Assembly (NCBI GenBank): GCA_002269645.1
Contig: NIVC01000482.1
Location: 255,909 to 319,908 of the forward strand
Source of the DNA: Macrostomum lignano
Taxonomy: Eukaryota
Direction of reading: 5' to 3'
Length of the DNA: 64,000 nt
A program made the position numbers and the translations under genes. The notes under the pieces were generated by a model. It was not told where the DNA came from. It made no database searches and saw nothing but the letters and a program-made list of their open reading frames with translations. Shown in pieces: positions 10,715-48,274 of this stretch. How positions within the stretch are numbered: position 1 is the first letter of the stretch; every line of letters begins with the position of its first letter.

Positions 10715-12930
10715 GTGATTCCTCTGCGCGATTTTCCGGATTCATTCGTTCGAACGCAACGCCGACCGGCTTTCCAAGAAAACCCGAAGAACCCAATTTC
10801 AAATCAAACACCAATTCCTAATTTTGATACAAGACAGCTTTGGCGCTTACTGAAACCACATAACCGCTCCAATAACAATGCAGCAATTGACGAAAACTTT
10901 GAGAAACATTTCCAAAACCTTGTTACTGAGCAGAATAGCAATATTAGACTTTCATACAACCTACACCTAGACAGCCCTACTCTAGCTGGTCTAGAGCACT
11001 TCAATGCCCCCTTCACTAAAGATGAAGTTATAAGACATATCAAAAAGCTCAAAGTCGACAAAGCACCAGGTCAAGATAAAGTCTACGTAGAAACCCTACA
11101 ATACCTTGAGAATAAACTCTCTGACTTCCTATGTTCACTCTTCAATGAAATTCTTAAACAGCAAACCTTCCCAACCAGTTGGATAACCAATACACTTTGC
11201 CCAATTTACGAAAACAAAGGCAACAAAAATGACCCCAATAATTATAGAGGTATATGCATCCAACCCATTCTTGGCAAGCTGCTCTGCCAAATAATCAAAT
11301 CAAGACTTGAAAAACTAGCACACTCAAACGACCTCATCTCAAAATACCAATATGGTTTCAAGCCCAATCACAGCACAATCGACCAGTGTTTCAACCTTTA
11401 TAACATTATTAATCAATCTATGTCTAGCAAAGAGGAACTTTTTATTGGGTTTGTTGACTACGAAAAAGCTTTCGATAGCCTAAACCAACCAACCCTCTGG
11501 CACAAAGTTGATAACCAGGGGATAAAGGGTCAAATGATGGAACTTATTGAAAACATGCATGAAAATGCATGCTTCATCCTGAAAAAAGATAACAATGATG
11601 AAACCCAACCAATCAGAATTTCTAAAGGAGTCCTCCAAGGGAACCCCCTTTCTACTGTGCTTTTCGAGCTATATATCAATGATATTGTTGAATACCTTGA
11701 GCTTGCTAGTCCCAGATACTCTTTCACTAGGCATACCTTCCCACGCATCCTTCTTTTCGCAGATGACCAAGCTATACTAGCAAAAAGCAAAGATGAACTC
11801 CAAGACACTTTTAATAATATGGAAAATTACTGCAAACAAAACTACTTGAAAGTAAATGCGAGCAAAACAAAATTCATGCAAGGCTGCACTAGCCAGAAGA
11901 CCAACATCGATAACACTGATAACAAAATATACTATGACCTTCAAGAAATTGAGAAAGTTAACGAATTTAAATACCTGGGAGTTATATTTGAGCCAAGAAA
12001 CAGCTTCAAAAAATGTATTGAGCACCAGACTAGTCAGGGTTACACAGCTATGTTCTCCCTGCTCCACAAAGTAAAGAATACATCCCTCATGGATATCACT
12101 CTCATTCGCAAACTATTTGACACCCTCGTTTCTCCTGTTATCACCTATGGTTGTGAACTTTGGGGACCCCTGGCCACCCTTTCCGACGCAAATGCTATCG
12201 ATAATATCCAATTAAAGTTCTACAAATACCTTCTTAACCTACCAAAATATGCGAGCAACAGTGTAATATCATCCGAACTCGAGCTCATACCAATCTCTCA
12301 ACAGATCGCAAAAACCTATCTTACTTACTGGCTAAAAATCAGACACAAAAAACTCTGTCCAACAACACTTGATATTTTTCACTCAAATACCAGCCAAAAT
12401 AACCCTTGGGTAACAAATGTTCAAAAGAAACTGAAAAGTATAGACCTCGAGACACTATACAAAGATAAAACCCCCAATTAAGTTTTAACAATGAGAAACT
12501 TCCAGTGAAAAAGCAACTGCACATGTATAGAGAAAGAGAACTAAGCCGAAAGCTAGACAACCAGCACCATATTAAATATTACAAAAGCGCTTACTTAGTC
12601 AAAAAAACCTGCAGACCTGTCCTCTCAAATTACTTTCCAAGTCTATTTAGAAACAAAAAATACCTAACGACCCTTCTGAAACTGAAATGTGAACTCACGC
12701 CCAAGGCATTCTCTCAGGAAGCTTGTGGACTCTGTGGAGCAAGAAATGGAGCCGATATTCTCCACTACCTAAGTGAGTGCCCACAAACACTAGAAATTAG
12801 GAAAAAATACTTTTCTCAATACCTTCTAGATGCCACACACATGCATAAAATAGGGTATGCCACAAATGAAAAAAGAGTCAGAAAAGAGCTCTCCGGAGTA
12901 GCCAAAATTTACGATGTCATGTACAGCTAA
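10715..12930 (+). mobile_element. Non-LTR retrotransposon (LINE) ORF2: reverse transcriptase plus C-terminal cysteine motif, one frameshift, 5'-truncated
   Basis: ORF 10715-12481 has KAPGQD, NYRGI, QYGFKPNHST, FVDYEKAFDSL, KGVLQGNPLS, LLFADD and FKYLG. It continues in another frame (12505-12930) with CGLCG...DILHYLSECP. No AP-endonuclease motifs seen upstream. The 3' UTR runs to a (TAC)n tail at 13524-13542. Confidence 0.93.
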
Positions 12931-14594: not shown

Positions 14595-16084
14595 ATAATT
14601 GGATCTGTTATATTATATCTATGGTCTTGGCTTGTTGAAACACTAGGCTATTCTAACAAGTCTAAGATTGAGGTCTAGGCCTAAGGTCTACTATGTATGC
14701 ACCAAAAGATCATCTATAGTTGTTTTTACACTAGCCATTTATGCCAATCCATTTTCTATTAATTCTTACACCAAACATTTATGCCAAGGCAAATTAATTT
14801 TTGTTTAGAATTATGCTAGAGATTTCTAGCATAACTGTAACAAAACAGACTATGGCCTCTAAATTTGTAGTATATGCTTATAAGCCAATTGGAATTGTGG
14901 CCACTTTATTTAGTTTTAGACTTTACTTTAGTATGTGGCTACTTTAAAGAAAGATAGGCCCTCGCCCTTAGCTTTCAACCTCTTAATTATGAATACTATT
15001 GCCTTGGCTGTTTCTAGCTCCTGGGGTTTAAAAAGATAATTGTATATAAATGCTATCTAAAACTAGATAGTTTGCAAATAAAATAAAATAATTAATGAAA
15101 GAATTTCTATTTTTTTATTTTAGCCTTTCTTCTCCTTTAAACTAATAAGAAATAGGTTTGTCTTGTAGCCATATTGGTCTATAGCCATCTTGGTCCATTA
15201 CAAAATTCATAAACATCTGAGTTATCAATGTGACAATCTAGGTTTTTGCAAGAGTCAATGTGTAAAATTGCACCTTGTACCTATTTCAGGGTATAATTTT
15301 AAGGCTCAGAGTGCAATTTCTCTCATAAAAAAACTAGGATTATAGATAGGCCTATCTATAAATATTTTCTTATATTAAAAATATGCATTGACCTATTGTC
15401 TTATTTTTAAAAATCTTATTCTAAGGCAATGCAAATAAGGCTTAAAAGGAAAATAAGTTGTAAGACTGCATTTAAACCATTCTAACTTTTTTAAATTTCA
15501 AGGTACAATTTCAAAATTCAGGGTATATATATATATACTATATATCTATAGGTATATCTATAAAAGTTGTACCTTTTTGATATTTAATAATCTTATAAGT
15601 TTTTACTTTATTATTTATAAAGTAAATATTTAAATATATATTTGAATATATAAATATATAAGGTTATATATAACATTAGGCCTATGATTGTGTACTATAA
15701 TATCCAGGAACATTTGTAGCAATGGATGACTATAATAAAACAATTGATAGATTAATAAACTATGAAATAAAATAAACTATATTTTTAGGCTTTTGTTATT
15801 ATTGAATTTTATGAAAAACTTGGTCATACTAGCCATATAATATAACAAGGCTGTGCATGTATGATTTAACTTATTTGTTGTCTTGAGCAATTGTTAAAAT
15901 TATATAATATACTAGTGTAGTCTTACTATACTGGTTCTTACCATAGTCAAAGCTTGCCTAAAACAAGCAAGACATGTATTTACAATAGACAATAAACATT
16001 TACAATGGTAAATAATGAACAATAAGAATTTAGATTTTGATTTCTTACAATTTTTTATATTGATTTGTTTGCCACTCATTCAAG

Positions 16085-17401
16085 CATCCAGCATCTGCCA
16101 GTGTCACTTGGTGCCCAGCCATCAATCAATTCTTGGTGTGGGACGCCAGTTCAGCGCAATGGCTGAGACAAGCCAGAGTCCTTGCTGTCCTTGTTGGCAC
16201 ATTGCCACGCTGTCCGCGTCAGAATCGGTGCCTTTACCTGCCCTGTGCGCTAACAGCCGAACAGGCAGCTGTTGCTGCTGAAGAATTGCAATCTGACATT
16301 CGATTCAGCTGTCAGACTGCCTGTCCTGACCATCCGGCTGACTCCGCCACCATCGCTGAGTATGCCAGGCAGCGTGAACAGAATTACAGTGAAGCTACAG
16401 AAGTTCTGTTAGCCAGGCGTAGGCTGAGGATGACGCCTCACGCGGCTAAGATTGCGGCCGGTCGAGCTGTTAAAAGGCGTAGACAGGAGCAGAAAATGGA
16501 GCACCAAACTGGAAGTAACAAATTAAAAGAACAAAAAACTGAAGTTGAAGCAAAACAACAAACTGTTTCGAAAATGGAAGTTAAAGAAAGCCATAAACTC
16601 TTGGAAACAAAACCGGAAGTTGAAGGAAACCAAATGCTTGGCGTGGAAGCGAAACCAGAAGTTGAAGGAAACCAAATGCTTGGCGTGGAAGCGAAACCAG
16701 AAGTTGAAGGAAACCAACTGCTAGGCGTGGAAGCAAAACCGGAAGTTGAAGAAAACCAAATGCTTGGCGTGGAAGCAAAACCGGAAGTTGAAGAAAACCA
16801 AACTGCTATTGAAGAACTGGAAGTTGATCTAGAAGCGGAAGCTTTAGCCGAAGGTCTTCCAACCTTAGACAGGGTTCCAATTCACCTGCCGACTCGAACC
16901 CCGGACTCTTGGCTTCGAAGAGGCGAACTTCTGCCCCATGACTGCGGCGCTGCGCCATCATCGCCGCCAGAAACGGCGCGCAACCGGCTTCGCTTAAACG
17001 TTTGGCGCCAATTATGGCGCCTAGGCTACTATCTGACTAGCGGCGCCGCTAATTTCGGTGCCGATTTCCTGCTCTACCAGGGCGAGCCGTTGCGCTATCA
17101 CGCCACGCATCTTGTCCTGTGCTGCCCGTCTGGCTCACTGCCTCCACCTCGGTCGCTCACCTGTCACCTGCGAGTGGCTAACGATGCAAAGAAATTGCTA
17201 TTGATTGCCCTGCCAGTTGATAATGGCGCAGGCGTGGCATTTCGCGTGTTCGCCTGGCGCAGAGGCGAAGCCGTGGAGTTGGAGTTGGGCAGCGAGCAGG
17301 AGCGAGACGCTTTGGATGCCATGGAGGCGGCGGCTGCAGCTGCTGCAACTGACGGACGGCTGAATGAGATGGACTGCGATGATGAGGAAGAGGATCTTTG
17401 A
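16085..17401 (+). CDS. TSEN34: tRNA-splicing endonuclease subunit Sen34
   Basis: N-terminal FLVW...LVGTLPRCPRQN..L.LP.AL..EQA and catalytic region VWRQLWRLGYYLTSGAANFGADFLLYQGEPLRYHA match TSEN34. The frame is open from the stop at 16061-16063 to TGA 17401. No in-frame ATG precedes the conserved N-terminus, so the start given is the inferred splice acceptor. Confidence 0.88.
   Translation, partial: HPASASVTWCPAINQFLVWDASSAQWLRQARVLAVLVGTLPRCPRQNRCLYLPCALTAEQAAVAAEELQSDIRFSCQTACPDHPADSATIAEYARQREQNYSEATEVLLARRRLRMTPHAAKIAAGRAVKRRRQEQKMEHQTGSNKLKEQKTEVEAKQQTVSKMEVKESHKLLETKPEVEGNQMLGVEAKPEVEGNQMLGVEAKPEVEGNQLLGVEAKPEVEENQMLGVEAKPEVEENQTAIEELEVDLEAEALAEGLPTLDRVPIHLPTRTPDSWLRRGELLPHDCGAAPSSPPETARNRLRLNVWRQLWRLGYYLTSGAANFGADFLLYQGEPLRYHATHLVLCCPSGSLPPPRSLTCHLRVANDAKKLLLIALPVDNGAGVAFRVFAWRRGEAVELELGSEQERDALDAMEAAAAAAATDGRLNEMDCDDEEEDL
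16612..16800 (+). repeat. 42-bp coding tandem repeat (KPEVEGNQMLGVEA, about 4.5 copies) within TSEN34
   Basis: In-frame repeat visible in both DNA and translation. Confidence 0.9.
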
Positions 17402-17454: not shown

Positions 17455-18176
17455 CTATCCGCTCTCTACCCAATGTTCTACTCATCTGATCCGCTCTCTA
17501 CCCAATGTTCTACTCATCTGATCCCCTCTCTACCCAATGTTCTACTCATCTGATCCGCTCTCTACCCAGTGTTCTACTCATCTGATCCGCTCTCTACCCA
17601 ATGTTCTACTCATCTGATCCGCTCTCTACCCAATGTTCTACTCATCTGATCCGCTCTCTACCCAATGTTCTACACATCTGATCCGCTCTCTACCCAGTGT
17701 TCTACTCATCTGATCCGCTCTCTACCCAGTGTTCTACTCATCTGATCCGCTCTCTACCCAGTGTTCTACTCATCTGATTCGCTCTCTACCCTGTGTTCTA
17801 CTCATCTGATCCACTCTCTACCCAATGTTCTACTCATCTGATCCGCTCTCTACCCAGTGTTCTACTCATCTGATCTGCTCTCTACCCAATGTTCTACTCA
17901 TCCGATCCGGTCTCTACCCAGTGTTCTACTCATCTGATCCACTCTCTACCCTGTGTTCTACTCATCTGATCCGCTCTCTACCCTGTGTTCTACTCATCTG
18001 ATCCGCTCTCTACCCAATGTTCTACTCATCTGATCCGCTCTCTACCCAATGTTCTACTCATCCGATCCGGTCTCTACCAAGTGTTCTACTCATCCGATCC
18101 GGTCTCTACCCAGTGTTCTACTCATCTGATCCACTGTCTACCCAGTTTTCTACTGATCTGATCCGCTCTCTACCCA
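17455..18176 (+). repeat. 32-bp minisatellite (TCTACCCAATGTTCTACTCATCTGATCCGCTC), about 22 copies
   Basis: Period 32 (e.g. 17465, 17497); lies between TSEN34 and MBD2/3. Confidence 0.95.
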
Positions 18177-18513
18177 TTGTGAACTTCGTAAAGTGCATTT
18201 ATGATTAATGTTTTCTTGCTTGAGGACAGTGTCTGTCAAATCTTCATTGTTGGTCAAGTGTTGTAACACTCACTGCGAATGCAATACACTTGTCGCATTT
18301 TATAATTGGCCAAAAAATTTCCAGTATCTGTAATGAGCGATTGTTTTTACTTTATTTTGTTCTCTAACGGAAAGAATAAATAATGTTTTTCATTACCTAT
18401 TGTCAGCATTTTTGCTAACTTTAAAAAATTCTATCCCAATTTCTGTTTGGATAGAAAAAGTCTTTTTCCTTTGTCTCGAACAAAAGATCCAAAGATCAAC
18501 TAAACCAGTTTCC

Positions 18514-20443
18514 ATGGCTACCAACCTCACTTCCGTTGTCGGCCTGCCGCCCGGCTGGAAGCGCGAGGAGTCGCTGAAGCAGTCCGGTTTGTCCTCGGGC
18601 AAGACCGAAGTCTATTATGTCAGCCCCGGCGGCAGGAAGCTGCGAAACCGGGTGGAACTGCAGCGAGCTCTGGGCGATCGATACGATCTCAGTAATTTCG
18701 ACTGGCGCACAGGCAGGTTTCACCCCTATGCTAGGCCTCAGCAACACCAGCACCAGCATCATCACCAGCATCATCAACAGGCTTCGTTACAGTCGGCTGG
18801 TCGGATAAAGACTCCAGCCGACATGCTCTCGTCTGCTGCCGCCGCTGCTGCTGCTGCCGCGGCCGCCGCCGCTGCCACCACTTCGCAGGCAACCAGTTCG
18901 CGATCTGGCGCAGGCGCCGGCTCTTCGGCCTCCAGCCGGGCAGTCACGGATCCGTCGTTGCGATTGCCGGTCAGACAGACCGCTTCTATGCTGAGGCAGT
19001 CGGTGAGTGGCTTTTGCAGCTGATTGCTTTATGGCTATGAGATATGTTGCTTGTAGAAATTGCAAATGCTGACTCAAATTCTGACCAACTGCTGACCTAC
19101 ATGCTGACCTACATGCTGACCTACATGCTGACTTAAATGCTGACCCAAATGCTGACCTACATGCTGACACAAATGCTGACTCAAGTGCTGACCTACTGCT
19201 GACCCAAATGCTGACCCAAATTCTGACTCAAGTGCTGACCTACAAGCTGACTCAAATGCTGACCCACTGCTGACCTACATGCTGACCCAAATGCTGACTC
19301 AAATGCTGACCCAAATGCTGACTCAAATGCTGACCCAAATGCTGACTCAAATGCTGATCCAAATGCTGACTCAAATGCTGACCCAAATGCTGACTCAAAT
19401 GCTGACCCAAATGCTGAATCAAATGCTGACCTACATGCTGTCCTACACGCTGACCCAAATGTTGACTCAAATGCTGACCCACTGCTGACCTACATGCTGA
19501 CACAAATGCTGACTCAAGTGCTGATCTACATGCTGACCCAAATGCTGACCTACACGCTGACCCAAATGCTGACTCAAATGCTGACCCACTGCTGACCTAC
19601 ATGCTGACCAAATGCTGACTCAAATGCTGACTCAAATGCTGACCTACATGCTGACCCACATGCTGACCCATGAACTGATCCCTTATGCCTGACCCATGAA
19701 CTGATCCCTTATGCCTGACCCATGAACTGATCCCATATGCCTGACCCATGAACTGATCCCATATGCCTGACCCATGAACTGATCCCATATGCCTGACCCA
19801 TGAACTGATCCATATGCCTGACCCATGAACTGATCCCATATGCCTGACCCATGAACTGATCCCATATGCCTGACCCATGAACTGATCCCATATGCCTGAC
19901 CCATGAACTGATCCCATATGCCTGACCCATGAACTGATCCCATATGCCTGACCCACATGCTGACTCACGCACCCGCAGGTGGAGCTGGTCCGCGGCCACC
20001 CAGACAGCCGGCGCAACGATCTGCAGCACGGGCCCAAAGACCGGCCCCGCCAGCTATTCTATCACAAGCGATTCGACAATCTGCGCGCCTGCGACCCGGA
20101 CACTGGCGAGCCCAGTCCGGAGATTGGCCTGCCGAAGCACCTGCAACCGGCCGGTGGCGGCCCGGTCACCGGCACCGACCAGCTGGTGCTCAGCGTTGCC
20201 GACTGTCTCAGCAGTGTCGGCGGTGGCCACTCCGGCGCTGTAGCCGTTGTCGGCCAGCAGAACTGCAAAGCATTCGAAAAGAATCCGCACGTGTCCGTGA
20301 ACCCGGACCAGCCGCTGGTTCGCTATCATCTGGTGTCTGACGACGAGGTCCGCCAGCAGGAGGCCGTGGTGCGCGAGGCTCGTCGAAGGCTGGCCTTGGC
20401 CCTGCGGCTGTTCAAAGCTGGCAGGGAGGCTTCGGCAGCTTAA
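18514..20443 (+). CDS. MBD2/3: Methyl-CpG-binding domain protein 2/3; join(18514..19002,19979..20443), about 317 aa
   Basis: MBD: LPPGWKREE...SGLSSGKTEVYYVSPGGRKLR...FDWRTG. Phase-0 intron TCG|GTGAGT...CGCAG|GTG. Exon 2 has PRQLFYHKRF, NPHVSVNPDQPL and the C-terminal coiled coil VSDDEVRQQEAVVREARRRLALAL. Confidence 0.92.
19065..19665 (+). repeat. 12-bp-based minisatellite (ATGCTGACCCAA/CTCAA) in MBD2/3 intron
   Basis: Tandem GCTGAC-containing units. Confidence 0.9.
19663..19950 (+). repeat. 26-bp minisatellite (CTGACCCATGAACTGATCCCATATGC) in MBD2/3 intron
   Basis: Period 26 (19741, 19767); about 11 copies. Confidence 0.92.
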
Positions 20444-20720: not shown

Positions 20721-21499
20721 GATTATGCTTAGTTTGCATGGCAAATAGAGATGTTATTTAGGAACTGTAGAAGTGCAAAATCCATTCTTGTACCAGCTTT
20801 ATCTGTCTGGCTCTCTAGCCTACCAGCATCCTTCATCCCGTCTTATGCCCTCAGTTATGTTTTTTTGCGTCTGTCTGTCCTGTGTCCCATTAGCAAGTTT
20901 TTGTGTAAATAATTTTGTCATTTGGGGTTTCACTTATAAATGCTGCTTGTACATGTACCGTAATGTGCGAAGCTAATACCGACATCAAGTTAATGTTAAT
21001 TGTCTATTATTGTTGTATGTCTATTAAAAGTACAAAATTAATCTGCCCTTATCCGCTATGGAGCTGATTATTCCCTAAGCTGTTGCTTATAAACAAAAAT
21101 TTCGTTAGCAAATTAATCTGTAATATATTACTTATATAAGTAGCTATGTTTGCTTCCCAGTGAATTTAATACGCCGTTTGCTTATGGTTCATTCAGAATT
21201 GGCAATTATAAGGTCATAATTTTATGCTGACTTTTTTGTTTAAACTAACAATGTTAATAAAACTGTGTAAGTTATCGCGCTAGCTGTTCCCGCGAAAATG
21301 AAATTATAATTCTGAATTCTGAATGAATGGCGTTTCGTGTTGTTCTTTATTTATGCTTGGTATATATGATCTAGTCAGTTAGAACTGTATGCTCAGGTTG
21401 ATTGCTTGTGGTGGATTTTTAAAAAAAATATGGGGAGTATTCTTAAACATACTCTTAGCTCAAGAGTCTACACTGTCTAATCTTCATCTGAGCCCTTCC

Positions 21500-22870
21500 C
21501 TCACCTTCTCTCTTATCTTGCTCTCCCTCCCTTCCCCTCTCCGTCTCCCTCTCTCCCCGCTCCGTCTCCTCCCCCGCTGTCTCCCTCCCCCCGCTGTCTC
21601 CCTCTCCCCGCTGTCTCCCTCTCCCCGCTGTCTCCCTCCCCCCGCTGTCTCCCTCTCCCCGCTGTCTCCCTCTCCCCGCTGTCTCCCTCTCCCCCTCTCC
21701 GTCTCCTTCTCCCGCTCCGTCTCCCTCCCCCCGCTGTCTCCCTCCCCCCGCTGTCTCCCTCTCCCCGCTGTCTCCCTCTCCCCGCTGTCTCCCTCCCCCC
21801 GCTGTCTCCCTCTCCCCGCTGTCTCCCTCTCCCCGCTGTCTCCCTCTCTCCCGCTGTCTCCCTCTCCCGCTGTCTCCCTCTCCCCGCTGTCTCCTCCCCC
21901 CGCTGTCTCCCTCCCCCCGCTGTCTCCCTCCCCCCGCTGTCTCCCTCCCCCCTCTCCGTCTCCTTCTCCCCGCTCCGTCTCCCTCCCCCCGCTGTCTCCC
22001 TCTCCCCGCTGTCTCCCTCCCCCGCTGTCTCCCTCTCCCCGCTGTCTCCCTCCCCCCGCTGTCTCCCTCCCCCCGCTGTCTCCCTCCCCCCGCTGTCTCC
22101 CTCCCCCCTCTCCGTCTCCTTCTCCCCGCTCCGTCTCCCTCCCCCCGCTGTCTCCCTCTCCCCGCTGTCTCCCTCCCCCGCTGTCTCCCTCTCCCCGCTG
22201 TCTCCCTCTCCCCACTGTCTCCCTCCCCCCGCTGTCTCCCTCCCCCGCTGTCTCCCTCCCCCCTCTCCGTCTCCTTCTCCCCGCTCCGTCTCCCTCCCCC
22301 CGCTGTCTCCCTCCCCCGCTGTCTCCCTCCCCCGCTGTCTCCCTTCCCCCTCTCCGTCTCCCTCCCCCCGCTGTCTCCCTCCCCCCGCTGTCTCCCTCCC
22401 CCCGCTGTCTCCCTCCCCCCGCTGTCTCCCTCCCCCCTCTCCGTCTCCTTCTCCCCGCTCCGTCTCCCTCCCCCCCTGTCTCCCTCTCCCCGCTGTCTCC
22501 CTCCCCCCGCTGTCTCCCTCTCCCCGCTGTCTCCCTCTCCCCGCTGTCTCCCTCCCCCTCTCCGTCTCCCTCCCCCGCTGTCTCCCTCCCCCCGCTGTCT
22601 CCCTCCCCCCTCTCCGTCTCCTTCTCCCCGCTCCGTCTCCCTCCCCCGCTGTCTCCCTCCCCCCGCTGTCTCCCTCCCCCTCTCCGTCTCCCTCCCCCCG
22701 CTGTCTCCCTCCCCCCGCTGTCTCCCCTCCCTCCATCTCCCTCCCCCTCCCACCCTCCGTCTACCTCACCCTCCTCCCTCTCCCACTCCCCGCGCCGTCT
22801 CCTCTCTTCCCTTTTCTCCCTTTTCTCCCTCTCCTTCCCTCCTTCTCTCCCTTTCTCCCCGTCTAACCCT
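21500..22870 (+). repeat. Pyrimidine-rich minisatellite (CCCCGCTGTCTCCCT(C/CT), about 17-18 bp)
   Basis: Tandem C/T-rich units; source of the spurious 400-500 aa ORFs. Confidence 0.93.
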
Positions 22871-23089
22871 TTCTCTCTTTCCCTCTGCCAAGATCAATCG
22901 AGCAAGCAAAAAACTTTCTTTTCTTAAAAACTTCTTGACGTCTCCAGTATGTGCGCATAAAAAAGTTGCCATGCACCTGCATGATAGGAAGTTGATTTAC
23001 AAGCTGACAATTTATGGTGCTATAGAGGGGAACTGAGAGGTACAATACAATACAAGCTAAACCTGTTATTTTCCCGCACCTGGTGACCC

Positions 23090-25590
23090 ATGCCTGACTA
23101 CCGGTTCTCCATGGACCAGGTGATCCCAGGCCTGTGGCTTGGCGGTCGCAACGCGGCCAAGAATGCTCAAGTGCTCCGATCCAGACGGGTCAGCCGCGTT
23201 CTAACAGTGGACGATTTGAACCTGCCAGACCGTCTGTTGGAGCAGTTTGACGATGGAGCGCATCGGTTTGTTCGGCTTGAGGATCACGCCAGGGAGAACC
23301 TGCTGGACCGGCTGCAGGAGTGCCTGCAGTTTATTGGCGAAGCCTTGGAAGGCGGGCACAATGTACTGGTGCACTGGTGCGCGCACTCTGCTGGCTCTGG
23401 ACGGGAAAAGCTGGGGGGGGGGTTGCTGGGAAAATCGCACAAAATATCCAGCTGCTGAGTTCGCTAGCTGGATGATGCTGATATGCTGATGGGTTGTCTA
23501 GGAGGGTGTGATTAAACCCAGGGGCGTCGCCACCGGAGGGGGACAGAGGGGCATGTCCCACCCAGTAAAAGCTATGGGGGGGACATGCCAATGCTTTGTC
23601 CCCCCCACCCCCACCTTGTTGACCCGTTACGTTATGGAAATCAATAATTTTGCTTCAGGGCGACAAAACATAACGCCTGCAGCACCAAAATGAGTGCCTG
23701 CAGCACCAAAATGAGTGCCTGCAGCGCCAAAATGAGTGCCTGCAGCACCAAAATGAGTGCCTGCAGCGCCAAAATGAGTGCCTGCAGCACTAAAATGTGT
23801 GTCTGCGGCGCTAAAATGGGGCCTGCGGCGCTAAAATGAGTGCCTGCAGCACTAAAATGAGTGCCTGCAGCACCAAAATGAGTGCCTGCAGCACCAAAAT
23901 GAGTGCCTGCAGCGCTAAAATGAGTGCCTGCAGCACTAAAATGAGTGCCTGCAGCACCAAAATGAGTGCCTGCAGCACCAAAATGAGTGCCTGCAGCGCC
24001 AAAATGAGTGCCTGCGGCGCCAAAATGAGTGCCTGCAGCAACAAAATGAGTGCCTGGGGCGCCAAAATGAGTGCCTGCAGCGCCAAAATGAGTGCCTGCA
24101 GCAACAAAATGAGTGCCTGCGGCGCCAAAATGAGTGCCTGCGGCGCCAAAATGATTGATGACAACACCGATTCGAAAATAATGTACATGTAGGAATTTAG
24201 TCATGTACATGTAGAATACTGTCCCCCCACCATAAAATCCATGGCGACGCCCCTGATGAAACCTTTAATTCCTAATAGTACGATTTCTTGCAAATAGTTG
24301 CGTTGGAGTAAAGATATTCTATTAGTAACATCCTTTTAGGACTAAAAGTACACTAAACATACATAGATAGGGACAACTGCAAGTTTTTCAAAACCTTGTC
24401 ACTAAACCATCTATTGATCAAGCAAAAGCTTGGAAGATACTCGTAAGGGGGAGTTCTAAAGTGATGAAACCTTAGCGTAGAGGAGATAATGCTAATGTAG
24501 AGAGGAATGTACAGATTTATTCGGCTAGCATGACAGCAGCTCTGGCTCTCGTGCCACAACCTCCTGAGTGGCCTGCAATTATTTTTATTAGCTAGTGTAC
24601 ATCGTCTAATAACGATGTCGACATTGTCTCCCAACCTCGCGTACACACGCTCACACAGGGTCCATCATGTGTGAGAATCGCACGACAAATCTTCCCCAAG
24701 GGCTACTCAAGTAGAAGCTTGACGGGAAACCTCGTTTCCAGGGAAAATTGTAGAAGGCAGGTTTCCGAAAAAATACACTACCGAGATGGCTTAGCTCATT
24801 GGTTTTATAAATCAATTTTGTCATTCTTAGCTGACTGTGTAACAATATGTGTATCAGAGATGATGAAATAGATTCATAAAACCAAAGTCGAGCTGTGCCA
24901 TGCATTGTTATGATTATCAATAGAGCTGTAAGAAAGGCACAACATATCAAAAGACGAACATATTGGGTCTGCATGCCTCCTATCGAAAGCAATAACAGTT
25001 TTTGTGCTGAAAAAATGAAAACCTCCTATCTCGGTAGTGTATTTTTTTGGAAAAGTCTGCCTTTTACAATTTTCCAGGAAACGAGGTTTCCCTTAAGCTT
25101 CTACTTAAGTAGTCCTTGTGGTGTCCTTGCAAATCCGCTAGCCTATTTTCGTATTTCGAGACCAAGGGCCTCGGAGCGAGAGTCGGAAGTGCTTGCCGCT
25201 GAGCTGACCAATCAATCAATCTCAACCATTCCAGTCGGGTGGGCGTCTCTCGCAGCGCATCCGTTGTCATCGCTTACCTGATGCAGAGTCAGCAGCTGGC
25301 CTTTCAATCGGCTTATGATTTGGTCAAAGCAGGCCGGCCTGTCATTGGGTGAGTCTGGCCGTGTTAGCTTTGCTCAGATTTCATCAGACCAACCTGTTTC
25401 AAAATTCCTTCTCTGCAGACCAAACGACGGTTTTGTAGAACAGCTGCGTCTGTTTGAGCAGATGGGCTGTCAAGTTGACAAAGACCACGCCGGCTACAAA
25501 GAGTTAGTAGAGCGGCTGAAAGAGGAGACTGCAATTTTGGAGAATTCCAAACTACCTGCTCCATCGCCTCGCCAGGGTGACTTAAGTTAG
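23090..25590 (+). CDS. DUSP12: Dual-specificity phosphatase, DUSP12/YVH1-like; join(23090..23376,25235..25348,25419..25590)
   Basis: MDQVIPGLWLG...VLVH|CRVGVSRSASVVIAYLM (HCxxGxSRS active site rebuilt across a phase-2 intron) ...G|PNDGFVEQLRLFEQMGCQVD. The C-terminal zinc-binding domain typical of DUSP12 was not found. Confidence 0.8.
23519..24255. mobile_element. CAGGG-family MITE (hAT-like) in DUSP intron 1, with expanded internal 21-bp repeat
   Basis: 14-bp TIRs CAGGGGCGTCGCCA / TGGCGACGCCCCTG; 8-bp TSD ATTAAACC / ATGAAACC; about 22 copies of AAAATGAGTGCCTGCAGCACC at roughly 23680-24150. Confidence 0.85.
24697..25118. mobile_element. CAAGG-family MITE in DUSP intron 1
   Basis: About 90-bp TIRs CAAGGGCTACTCAAGTAGAAGCTT...GAAACCTCGTTTCC...TACACTACCGAGAT and the reverse complement at about 25028-25118. 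TSD not evident. Confidence 0.8.
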
Positions 25591-34388: not shown

Positions 34389-36502
34389 ATGGACGACATC
34401 ACGTGCACGACGAAGGAGGTCGCACCGAATCACAAGTTGATATTTTTTCACAATGATACAAGGATATTCGGGGACTGGATTTCTCCGCCGAAGCCCAACT
34501 CCAAGAATGACAATCTGGCAAGTAAGTTGCGGGGAATTCTTTATCGGCCTGTATTTAAGGAGTGTCCGTTTATTGTGTGTTTATCATATGACTTGTGTTT
34601 AAGGAGGGTGTGTTTATTGGTGAGACTTTCATTGAGGGATCGCAATTATGGGCTGTGGCCTGTGCTTGAGACGTTGCGCTTTTTTCGTGTCCACTTCCTG
34701 AGGCGGTGTGTTTATTGAAGCAGTTTGTTTCCGGTCTGCGTGCCCTTCGATAGAGGATATCAAACATCTTGTGTTCTACACGCACTAGAGAAGCTCAGCC
34801 ACCCGATGCACACCTTCTTCCGAGACGTCATCTTCGTCGACGACTCGGTATCCGTCAGCCGCCTTCGCCTGGCCCAGGCGCCCGAGGCCCGCGTCGAGCT
34901 GGACTTTCAGCTAGCGGGATCCTGGTACCAGCGGCTGCAGCTGGAGCTGGACGGCACCTGCACCTGGCCTGGAGACGATGGAAACTATGTTGTGGTGAGC
35001 CTAACGATGCTGAAATGTTACAGCCACCGATGCCCACCACACTCCCTGCCCCACCTCACTCCCAGCATCCCACCCCACTCCCTGCCCCACCTCACTCCCA
35101 GCATCCCACCCCACTCCCTGCCCCACCTCACTCCCAGCATCCCACCCCACTCCCTGCCCCACCTCACTCCATGCCCCACCTCACTCCCTGCCGCACCTCA
35201 CTCCCTGCCCCACCCCACTCCCTGCCCCACCTCACTCCCTGACCCACCTCACTCCCTGCACCACCCCACTCCCAGCCCCACCCCACTCCCTGCCCCACCT
35301 CACTCCCTGCCCCACCCCACTCCCTGCCCCACCCCACTCCCTGCCCCACCTCACTCCCTTACCCACTCCACTCCTTGCCCACCTCACTCCCTGTCCCACT
35401 TCACTCCCTGTCCCACTTCACTCCCTGTCCCACTTCACTCCCTGTCCTACCTCACTCCTACCCCAGCTCACTCCCTGTTCCACCTCACTCCCTGCCCCAC
35501 CTCACTCCATGCACTACCCCACCACCACCTCACTCCCTGCACCATCCCACTCCCTGCCCTACCTCACTCCATGCCCCACCTCCCTCCCTGCCCCACCTCA
35601 CTCCCTGCCCCACATCACTCCCTGCCCCACATCACTCCCTGCCCCACATCACTCCCTGCCCCACATCACTCCCTGCCCCCTCACTCCCTGCCCCACCCGA
35701 TCACTCCCTGCCCCACCCCCACTCCTTGCCCCACTTCACTCCCTGTCCCACTTCACTCCCTGTCCCACTTCACTCCCTGTCCCACTTCACTCCCTGTCCT
35801 ACCTCACTCCTACCCCAGCTCACTCCCTGTTCCACCTCACTCCCTGCCCCACCTCACTCCCTGCACTACCCCACCACCACCTCACTCCCTGCACCACCCC
35901 ACTCCCTGCCCTACCTCACTCCATGCCCCACCTCCCTCCCTGCCCCACCTCACTCCCTGCCCCACATCACTCCCTGCCCCACATCACTCCCTGCCCCACA
36001 TCACTCCCTGCCCCACATCACTCCCTGCCCCCTCACTCCCTGCCCCACCCGATCACTCCCTGCCCCACCCCCACTCCTTGCCCCACTTCACTCCCTGTCC
36101 CACTTCACTCCCTGTCCCACTTCACTCCCTGTCCCACCTCACTCCTACTCCAGCTCACTTCCTGTTCCACCTCACTCCCTGCCCCACCCCACTCCCTATC
36201 CAACCAATCACGCTTAACCATCCCGGTTTGTAAAGTCATATTTGCTTTTAAGTACGCTCGTAATATTATCTATTTCCAAACACTTTTGATATGTTGACAC
36301 GCAGTGCAGAACCTATTGGAAGACGCGAAAACTGGTAGTGGTCATTGAAGACGATAAAAATTTTGAGACCAACGAGGATCGGGGCAGCGAAAACCGGATG
36401 TTGGTCATCTCCGTGTCCGAGTCTGATGCGAGTCGGCTGGAGCTGGTGGGAATCTATTTGTCTGTCTGTCTATCTTTGTATCTATGTATGTATGTATGTA
36501 TG

Positions 36503-42829: not shown

Positions 42830-48274
<5,445 letters not shown>

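Follow-up and report, generated by a model that had tools for sequence, protein, structure and literature searches.

Where does the start codon of the TSEN34 gene of the flatworm Macrostomum lignano come from? The gene lies on contig NIVC01000482.1 of assembly GCA_002269645.1 (Mlig_3_7), from which a stretch of 64,000 nucleotides (nt), hereafter the window, was analyzed; positions are counted from its first base. The TSEN34 exon opens with CAT CCA GCA (H-P-A), without an ATG. The analysis revealed that the initiator AUG is not encoded adjoining the TSEN34 open reading frame (ORF), and that the methionine very probably comes by splicing at 16084/16085, whichever the route. As judged from the sequence, there is about an even chance that the spliced leader (SL) supplies this AUG, alone or together with a cis-spliced upstream exon; of the donors considered it is the most probable.

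A TSEN34 exon without an adjoining start codon

The exon described in Table 1 is apparently the sole coding exon of the gene. Its ORF contains the tRNA intron endonuclease catalytic domain (PF01974, residues 302-380, E=4.9e-13, Pfam), and by phmmer it matched human TSEN34 chains from the PDB (E=4e-25), the match being made up of an N-terminal part (query 14-162, E=1.5e-10) and a catalytic part (E=1.5e-12). The catalytic Tyr (LLYQGEP), His (RYHATH) and Lys (DAKKLLL) are kept with respect to the human chains, and the Sen34-type N-terminal part is present; PF26577 is listed for the annotated window protein in precomputed records and was not returned by the local hmmscan. The ORF is a genuine and, by these sequence features, apparently functional TSEN34. 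Human TSEN34 (PDB 8HMZ, 8ISS, 7UXA, 7ZRZ) has the same N-terminal part (LVW...PRxPRQN) and the same Tyr/His/Lys catalytic domain, whereas in M. lignano the gene consists of one exon, with an acidic insert of five 14-amino-acid (aa) repeats, an acidic tail and no start codon of its own. The repeat, with the unit EAKPEVEGNQMLGV, lies after the N-terminal part and ahead of the catalytic domain, and the paralogue P0003 has one unit fewer, so that the repeat number differs among genomic copies. In an exhaustive phmmer search (1.84 billion representatives) the best relatives reached at most 37% identity, and the top match by score 29%; with no relative above 37%, there was no congener locus for comparison.

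The TSEN34 frame is closed upstream by a TGA, after which the in-frame residues read F V C H S F K H P A S A S V T W C P A I N Q F L V W, with FLVW at 16130-16141. A start at the first in-frame ATG of the exon would remove the N-terminal part that matches human TSEN34. The N-terminus was therefore placed by alignment with human TSEN34 and eleven homologues from the exhaustive search, in which VTWCP-AINQ-FLVW of M. lignano corresponded to LVVEV-ANGRS-LVW in human and to ITLFA-SGGQ-IFVW in others. The first beta-strand (VTWCP, the counterpart of human LVVEV) is thus encoded from about 16103, and the methionine of the homologues stands 0-16 residues ahead of this strand, in some with more. From the strand position and this range it follows that the start codon must act between 16063 and about 16100. 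The interval from 16064 to about 16100 holds no ATG and a single near-cognate codon, AAG (16082); the in-frame near-cognates ATC 16121, TTG 16133 and GTG 16136 lie farther in. A methionine spliced on at 16085 would stand six residues before strand 1 and 17 before LVW, which is normal for the homologues. The first-pass annotation had claimed that no ATG separates the in-frame stop from FLVW and that a spliced-on methionine would lie at about the usual distance from LVW, and both claims were borne out.

The gene is present in three genomic copies, those of the window and of the loci L002 and L003, which share 99% identity in the 300 nt upstream. Both other copies carry the same in-frame TGA and the same AAG and likewise lack an ATG, and the identical arrangement indicates that no assembly error lies behind the missing ATG. 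At 99% identity, the comparison of the three copies had no power to detect upstream constraint.

Table 1. Positions of the features of the TSEN34 locus within the window (a slash marks a splice junction).
Feature	Position	Strand	Remarks
Candidate cis start codon, end of putative 5' mini-exon	16005..16007	+	A at -3 (ACAATG)
Candidate 5' splice site GTAAAT	16008..16013	+	would define a 77-nt intron, 16008-16084
AG-free T-rich tract, 49 nt	16034..16082	+	upstream of the acceptor
In-frame stop TGA	16061..16063	+	upstream limit of the TSEN34 frame; same in L002 and L003
Proposed 3' splice site AG	16083..16084	+	context TTCAAG/CAT; TTGAAG/ in both paralogues
TSEN34 main coding exon	16085..17401	+	438 codons and TGA stop (17399-17401); from translation
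Three CAG acceptor-like sites	16089-91, 16099-101, 16116-18	+	out of frame for an incoming AUG
First in-frame ATG within the exon	16430..16432	+	115 codons after 16085
Coding tandem repeat in TSEN34	16602..16807	+	42-nt unit (14 aa), 4.9 copies
Probable poly(A) signal AATAAA	18375..18380	+	no other AATAAA from the TSEN34 stop to the next gene

The proposed in-frame acceptor and the spliced leader

A U-rich tract at about 16035-16080, ending at the AG of 16083-84 with the next base in frame, had been noted in the first-pass annotation, and the description held: this segment is 59% T and 72% pyrimidine, it lies within the AG-free zone, and 16085 is in frame 0. The AG at 16083-84 is the first one after 16032-33, and AG-to-AG gaps that long (48 nt or more) amount to only 3.7% in the local 2 kb. 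A branch-like TTGAT is found at 16060-64, with A16063 located 21 nt upstream of the acceptor, and the GC content rises from 22% (16008-84) to 55% (16085-16184), with the step exactly at 16085. The AGs in 16034-16130 are located at 16083-84 (frame 0), 16090-91 (frame 1), 16100-01 (frame 2) and 16117-18 (frame 1), and only that at 16083-84 puts an incoming AUG in the TSEN34 frame. An AUG joined at the other three AGs, where the exon sequences from 16092, 16102 and 16119 are CATCTGCCAG, TGTCACTTGG and CCATCAATCA, would open dead ORFs of 25, 48 and 16 codons, respectively. A frame match by itself has a chance of 1 in 3. Taken from these sequence features, namely the AG-free zone, the GC step, the branch-like TTGAT and the later AGs being out of frame, 16084/16085 is a credible 3' splice site.

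The published SL of M. lignano has 35 nt, CGGTCTCTTACTGCGAAGACTCAATTTATTGCATG, and ends in ATG; its end, ...TTATTGCATG, is followed by GTAAG (PMC8629364). Between 30 and 39% of M. lignano genes are trans-spliced, with an enrichment among conserved genes, as 69.9% of the trans-spliced genes and 36.9% of the others are conserved with human (PMC8629364); from these figures, with 30% of genes trans-spliced, the share among human-conserved genes is about 45%. ATG is the end of every reported flatworm SL (PMC12582326). In Schistosoma mansoni, the SL AUG serves as initiator, and over 40 cDNAs depend on it (Cheng et al., 2006, as summarised in PMC9851317); the latter source gives the SL AUG as in frame in 28% of trans-spliced mRNAs. 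In the work on the M. cliftonense and M. hystrix genomes, the final ATG of the Macrostomum SL is considered a likely start codon (PMC10468722). The premises of the first-pass annotation, that flatworm SLs end in an AUG usable as initiator and that this would have to apply to the organism at hand, are thus in agreement with the literature.

In the proposed mechanism, the AT-rich outron of the primary transcript would be discarded, together with the in-frame TGA, by trans-splicing onto the 16083-84 acceptor, and the SL, with AUG as its last three bases, would be joined at 16085 (SL-AUG/CAU CCA GCA...). This join reads MHPASASVTWCPAINQFLVW, with the junction string ATTTATTGCATG+CATCCAGCATCTGCC, and the ribosome would use the SL AUG as the TSEN34 initiator, giving M-HPASASVTWCPAINQFLVW, a product of 439 aa. 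The SL-AUG mRNAs of flatworms (Cheng et al., 2006; the 'slORFs' of PMC9851317) likewise combine an SL ending in AUG with an acceptor in frame, and like them TSEN34 has a conserved ORF without an AUG of its own and with an in-frame stop upstream. Unlike the S. mansoni cases, the present one concerns a free-living species and another gene, has a candidate AUG-ended cis exon as competitor, and its trans-splicing is proposed from genomic sequence.

The available gene models bear on the junction. Both paralogue proteins (BOX15_Mlig033256g1 and BOX15_Mlig008060g1) are named 'partial' in GenBank, and PAA71616.1, the 'partial' protein of L003, has as its first residue the H whose codon is equivalent in position to 16085, directly after the acceptor. 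In the other two TSEN34 models, the start is displaced downstream from the acceptor by 12 and 36 nt, to A (16097-equivalent) and to I (16121); the latter is the start of the annotated coding sequence (CDS) of the window and is compatible with a transcript start at 16119, after the CAG. None of the three RNA-seq-guided models has an upstream coding exon. In the TBONE pipeline behind the Mlig_3_7 annotation, the SL was trimmed from de novo transcripts and reads, and models were cut at SL peaks (PMC5730564). Given such trimming, the start of PAA71616.1 exactly at the acceptor would favor an SL junction there; it is suggestive only, since annotation 5' ends are ragged.

An upstream SL relic or pseudogene, as a retrogene or an inserted SL gene giving ATG/GT would leave, was rejected, as the local alignment score of 14 was equalled or exceeded by 46% of background segments. 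No SL RNA gene or any other Rfam RNA was found in the 64-kb window.

A possible cis-spliced mini-exon and other conceivable sources of the AUG

The ATG at 16005-16007 directly abuts the GTAAAT of a candidate donor, and joining 16007 to 16085 gives a 439-codon ORF (MHPASAS...; junction string CATTTACAATG+CATCCAGCATCTGCC) identical to the SL product, with the TGA removed together with the intron. The first-pass annotation had named a cis-spliced upstream exon carrying an ATG as the finding that would speak against an SL-derived start, and ATG 16005-07/GTAAAT fits that description as a sequence-level candidate. Its proposal of an SL-derived start thus stood as regards the in-frame acceptor and the ATG at the SL end, and was incomplete in having overlooked this donor. 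Splicing in cis only, with transcription from upstream of 16005 and no need of an SL, is a serious possibility that we nevertheless regard as rather unlikely. In its favor, ATG/GTAAAT is kept in the window and in L002, and L003 even has the consensus GTAAGT; the ATG has a good Kozak context with an in-frame TAA 9 nt upstream; it is the sole candidate within 1.1 kb upstream in which an ATG abuts a donor, and this strand has only 3 occurrences of ATGGTAAR in the 64 kb; and the features of the acceptor suit an intron as well as an outron. Chance was estimated by shuffling the local 1 kb 3000 times with dinucleotides preserved, with a donor defined by at least 3/4 consensus matches. Within 100 nt, an ATG abutting a donor arose in 0.8-1.3% of the shuffles and any viable cis exon in 4%, whereas within 300 nt these values were 4.5 and 20%, respectively; as the pattern was noticed after the fact, the fair significance of the cis look-alike lies between about 1% and 20%. 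Against it, the mini-exon is absent from all three RNA-seq-guided models, although spliced reads should reveal it; a first exon of about 70 nt in a weakly expressed, triplicated gene with ragged model 5' ends could, in turn, have been missed. Two of the three copies have A at position +5 and thereby depart from the GT[G/A]AG motif, which 65% of M. lignano donors show (PMC8629364), and a 4-codon upstream ORF (ATG 15974) lies within the putative mini-exon. Short AT-rich introns are also scarce elsewhere in the window, where a stringent composition-based scan gave two candidates only, too few to calibrate an intron of 77 nt. Genes with a phase-0 intron right after the start codon (ATG/GT genes) are the known counterpart, with which the locus shares an ATG abutting GTAAAT or GTAAGT, a 77-nt AT-rich interval and a pyrimidine tract with AG; it differs from these first-exon genes in the non-consensus +5 of two copies and in being known from genomic sequence.

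The reading in which the SL supplies the AUG has several points against it. Searches for an SL-bearing read, expressed sequence tag or transcript found none: protein word-index searches with the TSEN34 N-terminus, also prefixed by the SL-encoded peptide, exact look-ups of the M-prefixed proteins of all three alleles and a DNA scan of metagenome contigs for ATG plus exon gave no match, and neither did searches in the supplements of two M. lignano transcriptome papers. A good cis donor preceded by ATG stands 77 nt upstream of the acceptor, and under the rule of Conrad et al., as cited in PMC8629364, an upstream cis donor competes with trans-splicing if transcription starts above it, so the 16008 donor would compete if transcription starts upstream. 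The acceptor is AAG, unlike the [T/C]TNCAG motif enriched at M. lignano trans-splice sites (PMC8629364). The 5' ends of the annotation are often ragged, and neighboring CDSs start with non-ATG codons and no preceding AG (TGG at 18448, GAC at 23096). The weighing began from roughly even prior odds for SL and cis; the cis look-alike shifts it several-fold toward cis, the exact start of PAA71616.1, together with the fact that every model lacks exon 1, shifts it about three-fold toward the SL, and the higher frequency of trans-splicing in conserved genes counts a little for the SL. Since the SL and cis proteins are identical, N-terminal proteomics and ribosome profiling are unable to separate the routes. 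Sources other than these two appear much less probable. A distant upstream exon, perhaps with a few more codons, could be cis-spliced to 16085 or to another phase-matched acceptor and would give a longer N-terminus; the mean M. lignano intron of 1.1 kb (PMC5730564), the residues that homologues carry before strand 1 and one more formally viable candidate (ATG 14874, 19 codons, GTATGT donor, 1154-nt intron) speak for it, but the upstream 7 kb consists of AT-rich repeat and retrotransposon with no annotated exon, such an exon is in no gene model, and the candidate is unremarkable, as shuffles give one like it within 1 kb 56% of the time. It is accordingly held to be very unlikely. Least probable of all, with hardly any weight left to it, is that no splicing takes place and that translation starts within 16064-16100 at a codon other than AUG, or from the internal ATG 16430, or that the locus is a decaying pseudogene or an assembly error. 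AAG 16082 is one step from AUG and further near-cognates lie in frame, yet AAG is among the weakest near-cognate start codons, and the others, or ATG 16430, would delete strand 1 or the whole human-matching N-terminal part; the N-terminal alignment led to the rejection of non-AUG and internal initiation. A pseudogene or an error is opposed by the three copies, which keep the 438-codon ORF, the catalytic residues and an identical 5' sequence.

The SL and cis routes may also share the acceptor. In monocistronic genes of parasitic flatworms, 66% of SL acceptors on average are also used in cis, for which alternative transcription starts are one explanation offered (PMC12582326). Such frequent sharing makes the use of 16084/85 in both cis and trans plausible by analogy. 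As in those cases, 16084/85 has an SL and an upstream cis donor, between which alternative transcription starts could decide; unlike them, both 5' partners end in AUG at the junction and lead to the same ORF, a feature not described in that paper. In a further version, which seems improbable, the acceptor would be served redundantly by the SL in trans and by the mini-exon ATG/GTAAAT in cis, and the AAG would perhaps be a former ATG start; if so, neither the transcription start nor the splicing mode would alter the TSEN34 that is made. The AAG at 16082-84 is one substitution from ATG, at the exact codon that needs a methionine, and is the sole NAG triplet of this kind; as an acceptor, AAG is uncommon. 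At M. lignano acceptors, CAG is the enriched motif (PMC8629364). Speculatively, an ancestral T-to-A change (ATG to AAG) may have destroyed the start and created the AG, compensated by a 5' exon ending in AUG.

As a separate observation, an imperfect 20-nt direct repeat (ATTTACAATAGACAATAAAC / ATTTACAATGGTAAATAATG) with a TRF score of only 55 spans 15978-16015. The ATG/GTA of the cis donor reads ATAGAC in the first repeat copy, and three clustered differences create the start codon and the donor; the repeat may be due to chance in AT-rich DNA.

Surroundings of the gene and implications

Upstream of TSEN34, an RVT_1 ORF (E=2e-33) of 588 aa at 10715-12481 is followed by a 141-aa ORF, and together (10715-12930, + strand) they form a non-LTR (long terminal repeat) retrotransposon-like insertion in the 7-kb gap between a WSC-domain gene and TSEN34. 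Downstream, a 32-nt minisatellite (ATCCGCTCTCTACCCAGTGTTCTACTCATCTG; 22.6 copies, 93% matches) occupies 17457-18180, between the TSEN34 stop and the AATAAA, and probably lies inside the TSEN34 3' untranslated region. Directly 3' of TSEN34, an MBD2/3-like gene (Pfam MBD, 1.7e-13) was located at 18446-20443 (+ strand). Exon-chain enumeration gave it one 976-nt GTGAGT...CAG intron (19003-19978), and an exact look-up of the derived protein returned no match. The MBD models of the three copies share their start (about 8446 in L002 and 8060 in L003), which lacks a preceding AG (18446/7), and the start in the window is about 70 nt past the AATAAA and upstream of the in-frame ATG 18514. Rather than a true 5' end, this start probably reflects the pipeline having cut a shared transcriptional unit behind the TSEN34 poly(A) site. 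The MBD gene may be co-transcribed with TSEN34; an operon argument for trans-splicing was set aside, as the MBD start, without a preceding AG and probably a pipeline cut, gives it no clear support.

Further downstream, a dual-specificity phosphatase gene (DSPc, precomputed Pfam) lies at 23090-25590 (+ strand), for which exon-chain enumeration did not resolve the exon chain. Its CDS starts at GAC 23096, two codons past ATG 23090, and is another 5'-partial model that illustrates the ragged 5' ends of the annotation. Long ORFs of about 500-580 aa at 21389-22927, 34725-36233 and 46490-48241 have 58-61% GC, overlapping ORFs on both strands and no Pfam match; they may be low-complexity or repeat regions and not genes.

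The SL-AUG mechanism was established, the SL known and the genome annotated beforehand; what appears to be new is that this housekeeping gene seems to depend on a spliced-on AUG and that an AUG-ended cis donor shadows the SL. For annotation, this matters because such genes are recorded as 5'-partial, and recognising the spliced-on methionine gives the complete 439-aa protein. M. lignano is also a model for transgenesis, in which constructs and knock-ins must keep the acceptor and not presume a genomic ATG. The cis look-alike donor, in addition, bears on the sharing of acceptors by both splicing modes, cis and trans, in flatworms. If the SL does supply the start, an essential housekeeping enzyme relying on the SL AUG would be a case from a free-living, early-branching flatworm of a mechanism shown mainly in schistosomes. 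If the acceptor is served redundantly, the locus would offer a concrete example of why flatworm SLs conserve a 3' AUG, and would show how genes drift between cis and trans modes of 5'-end formation.

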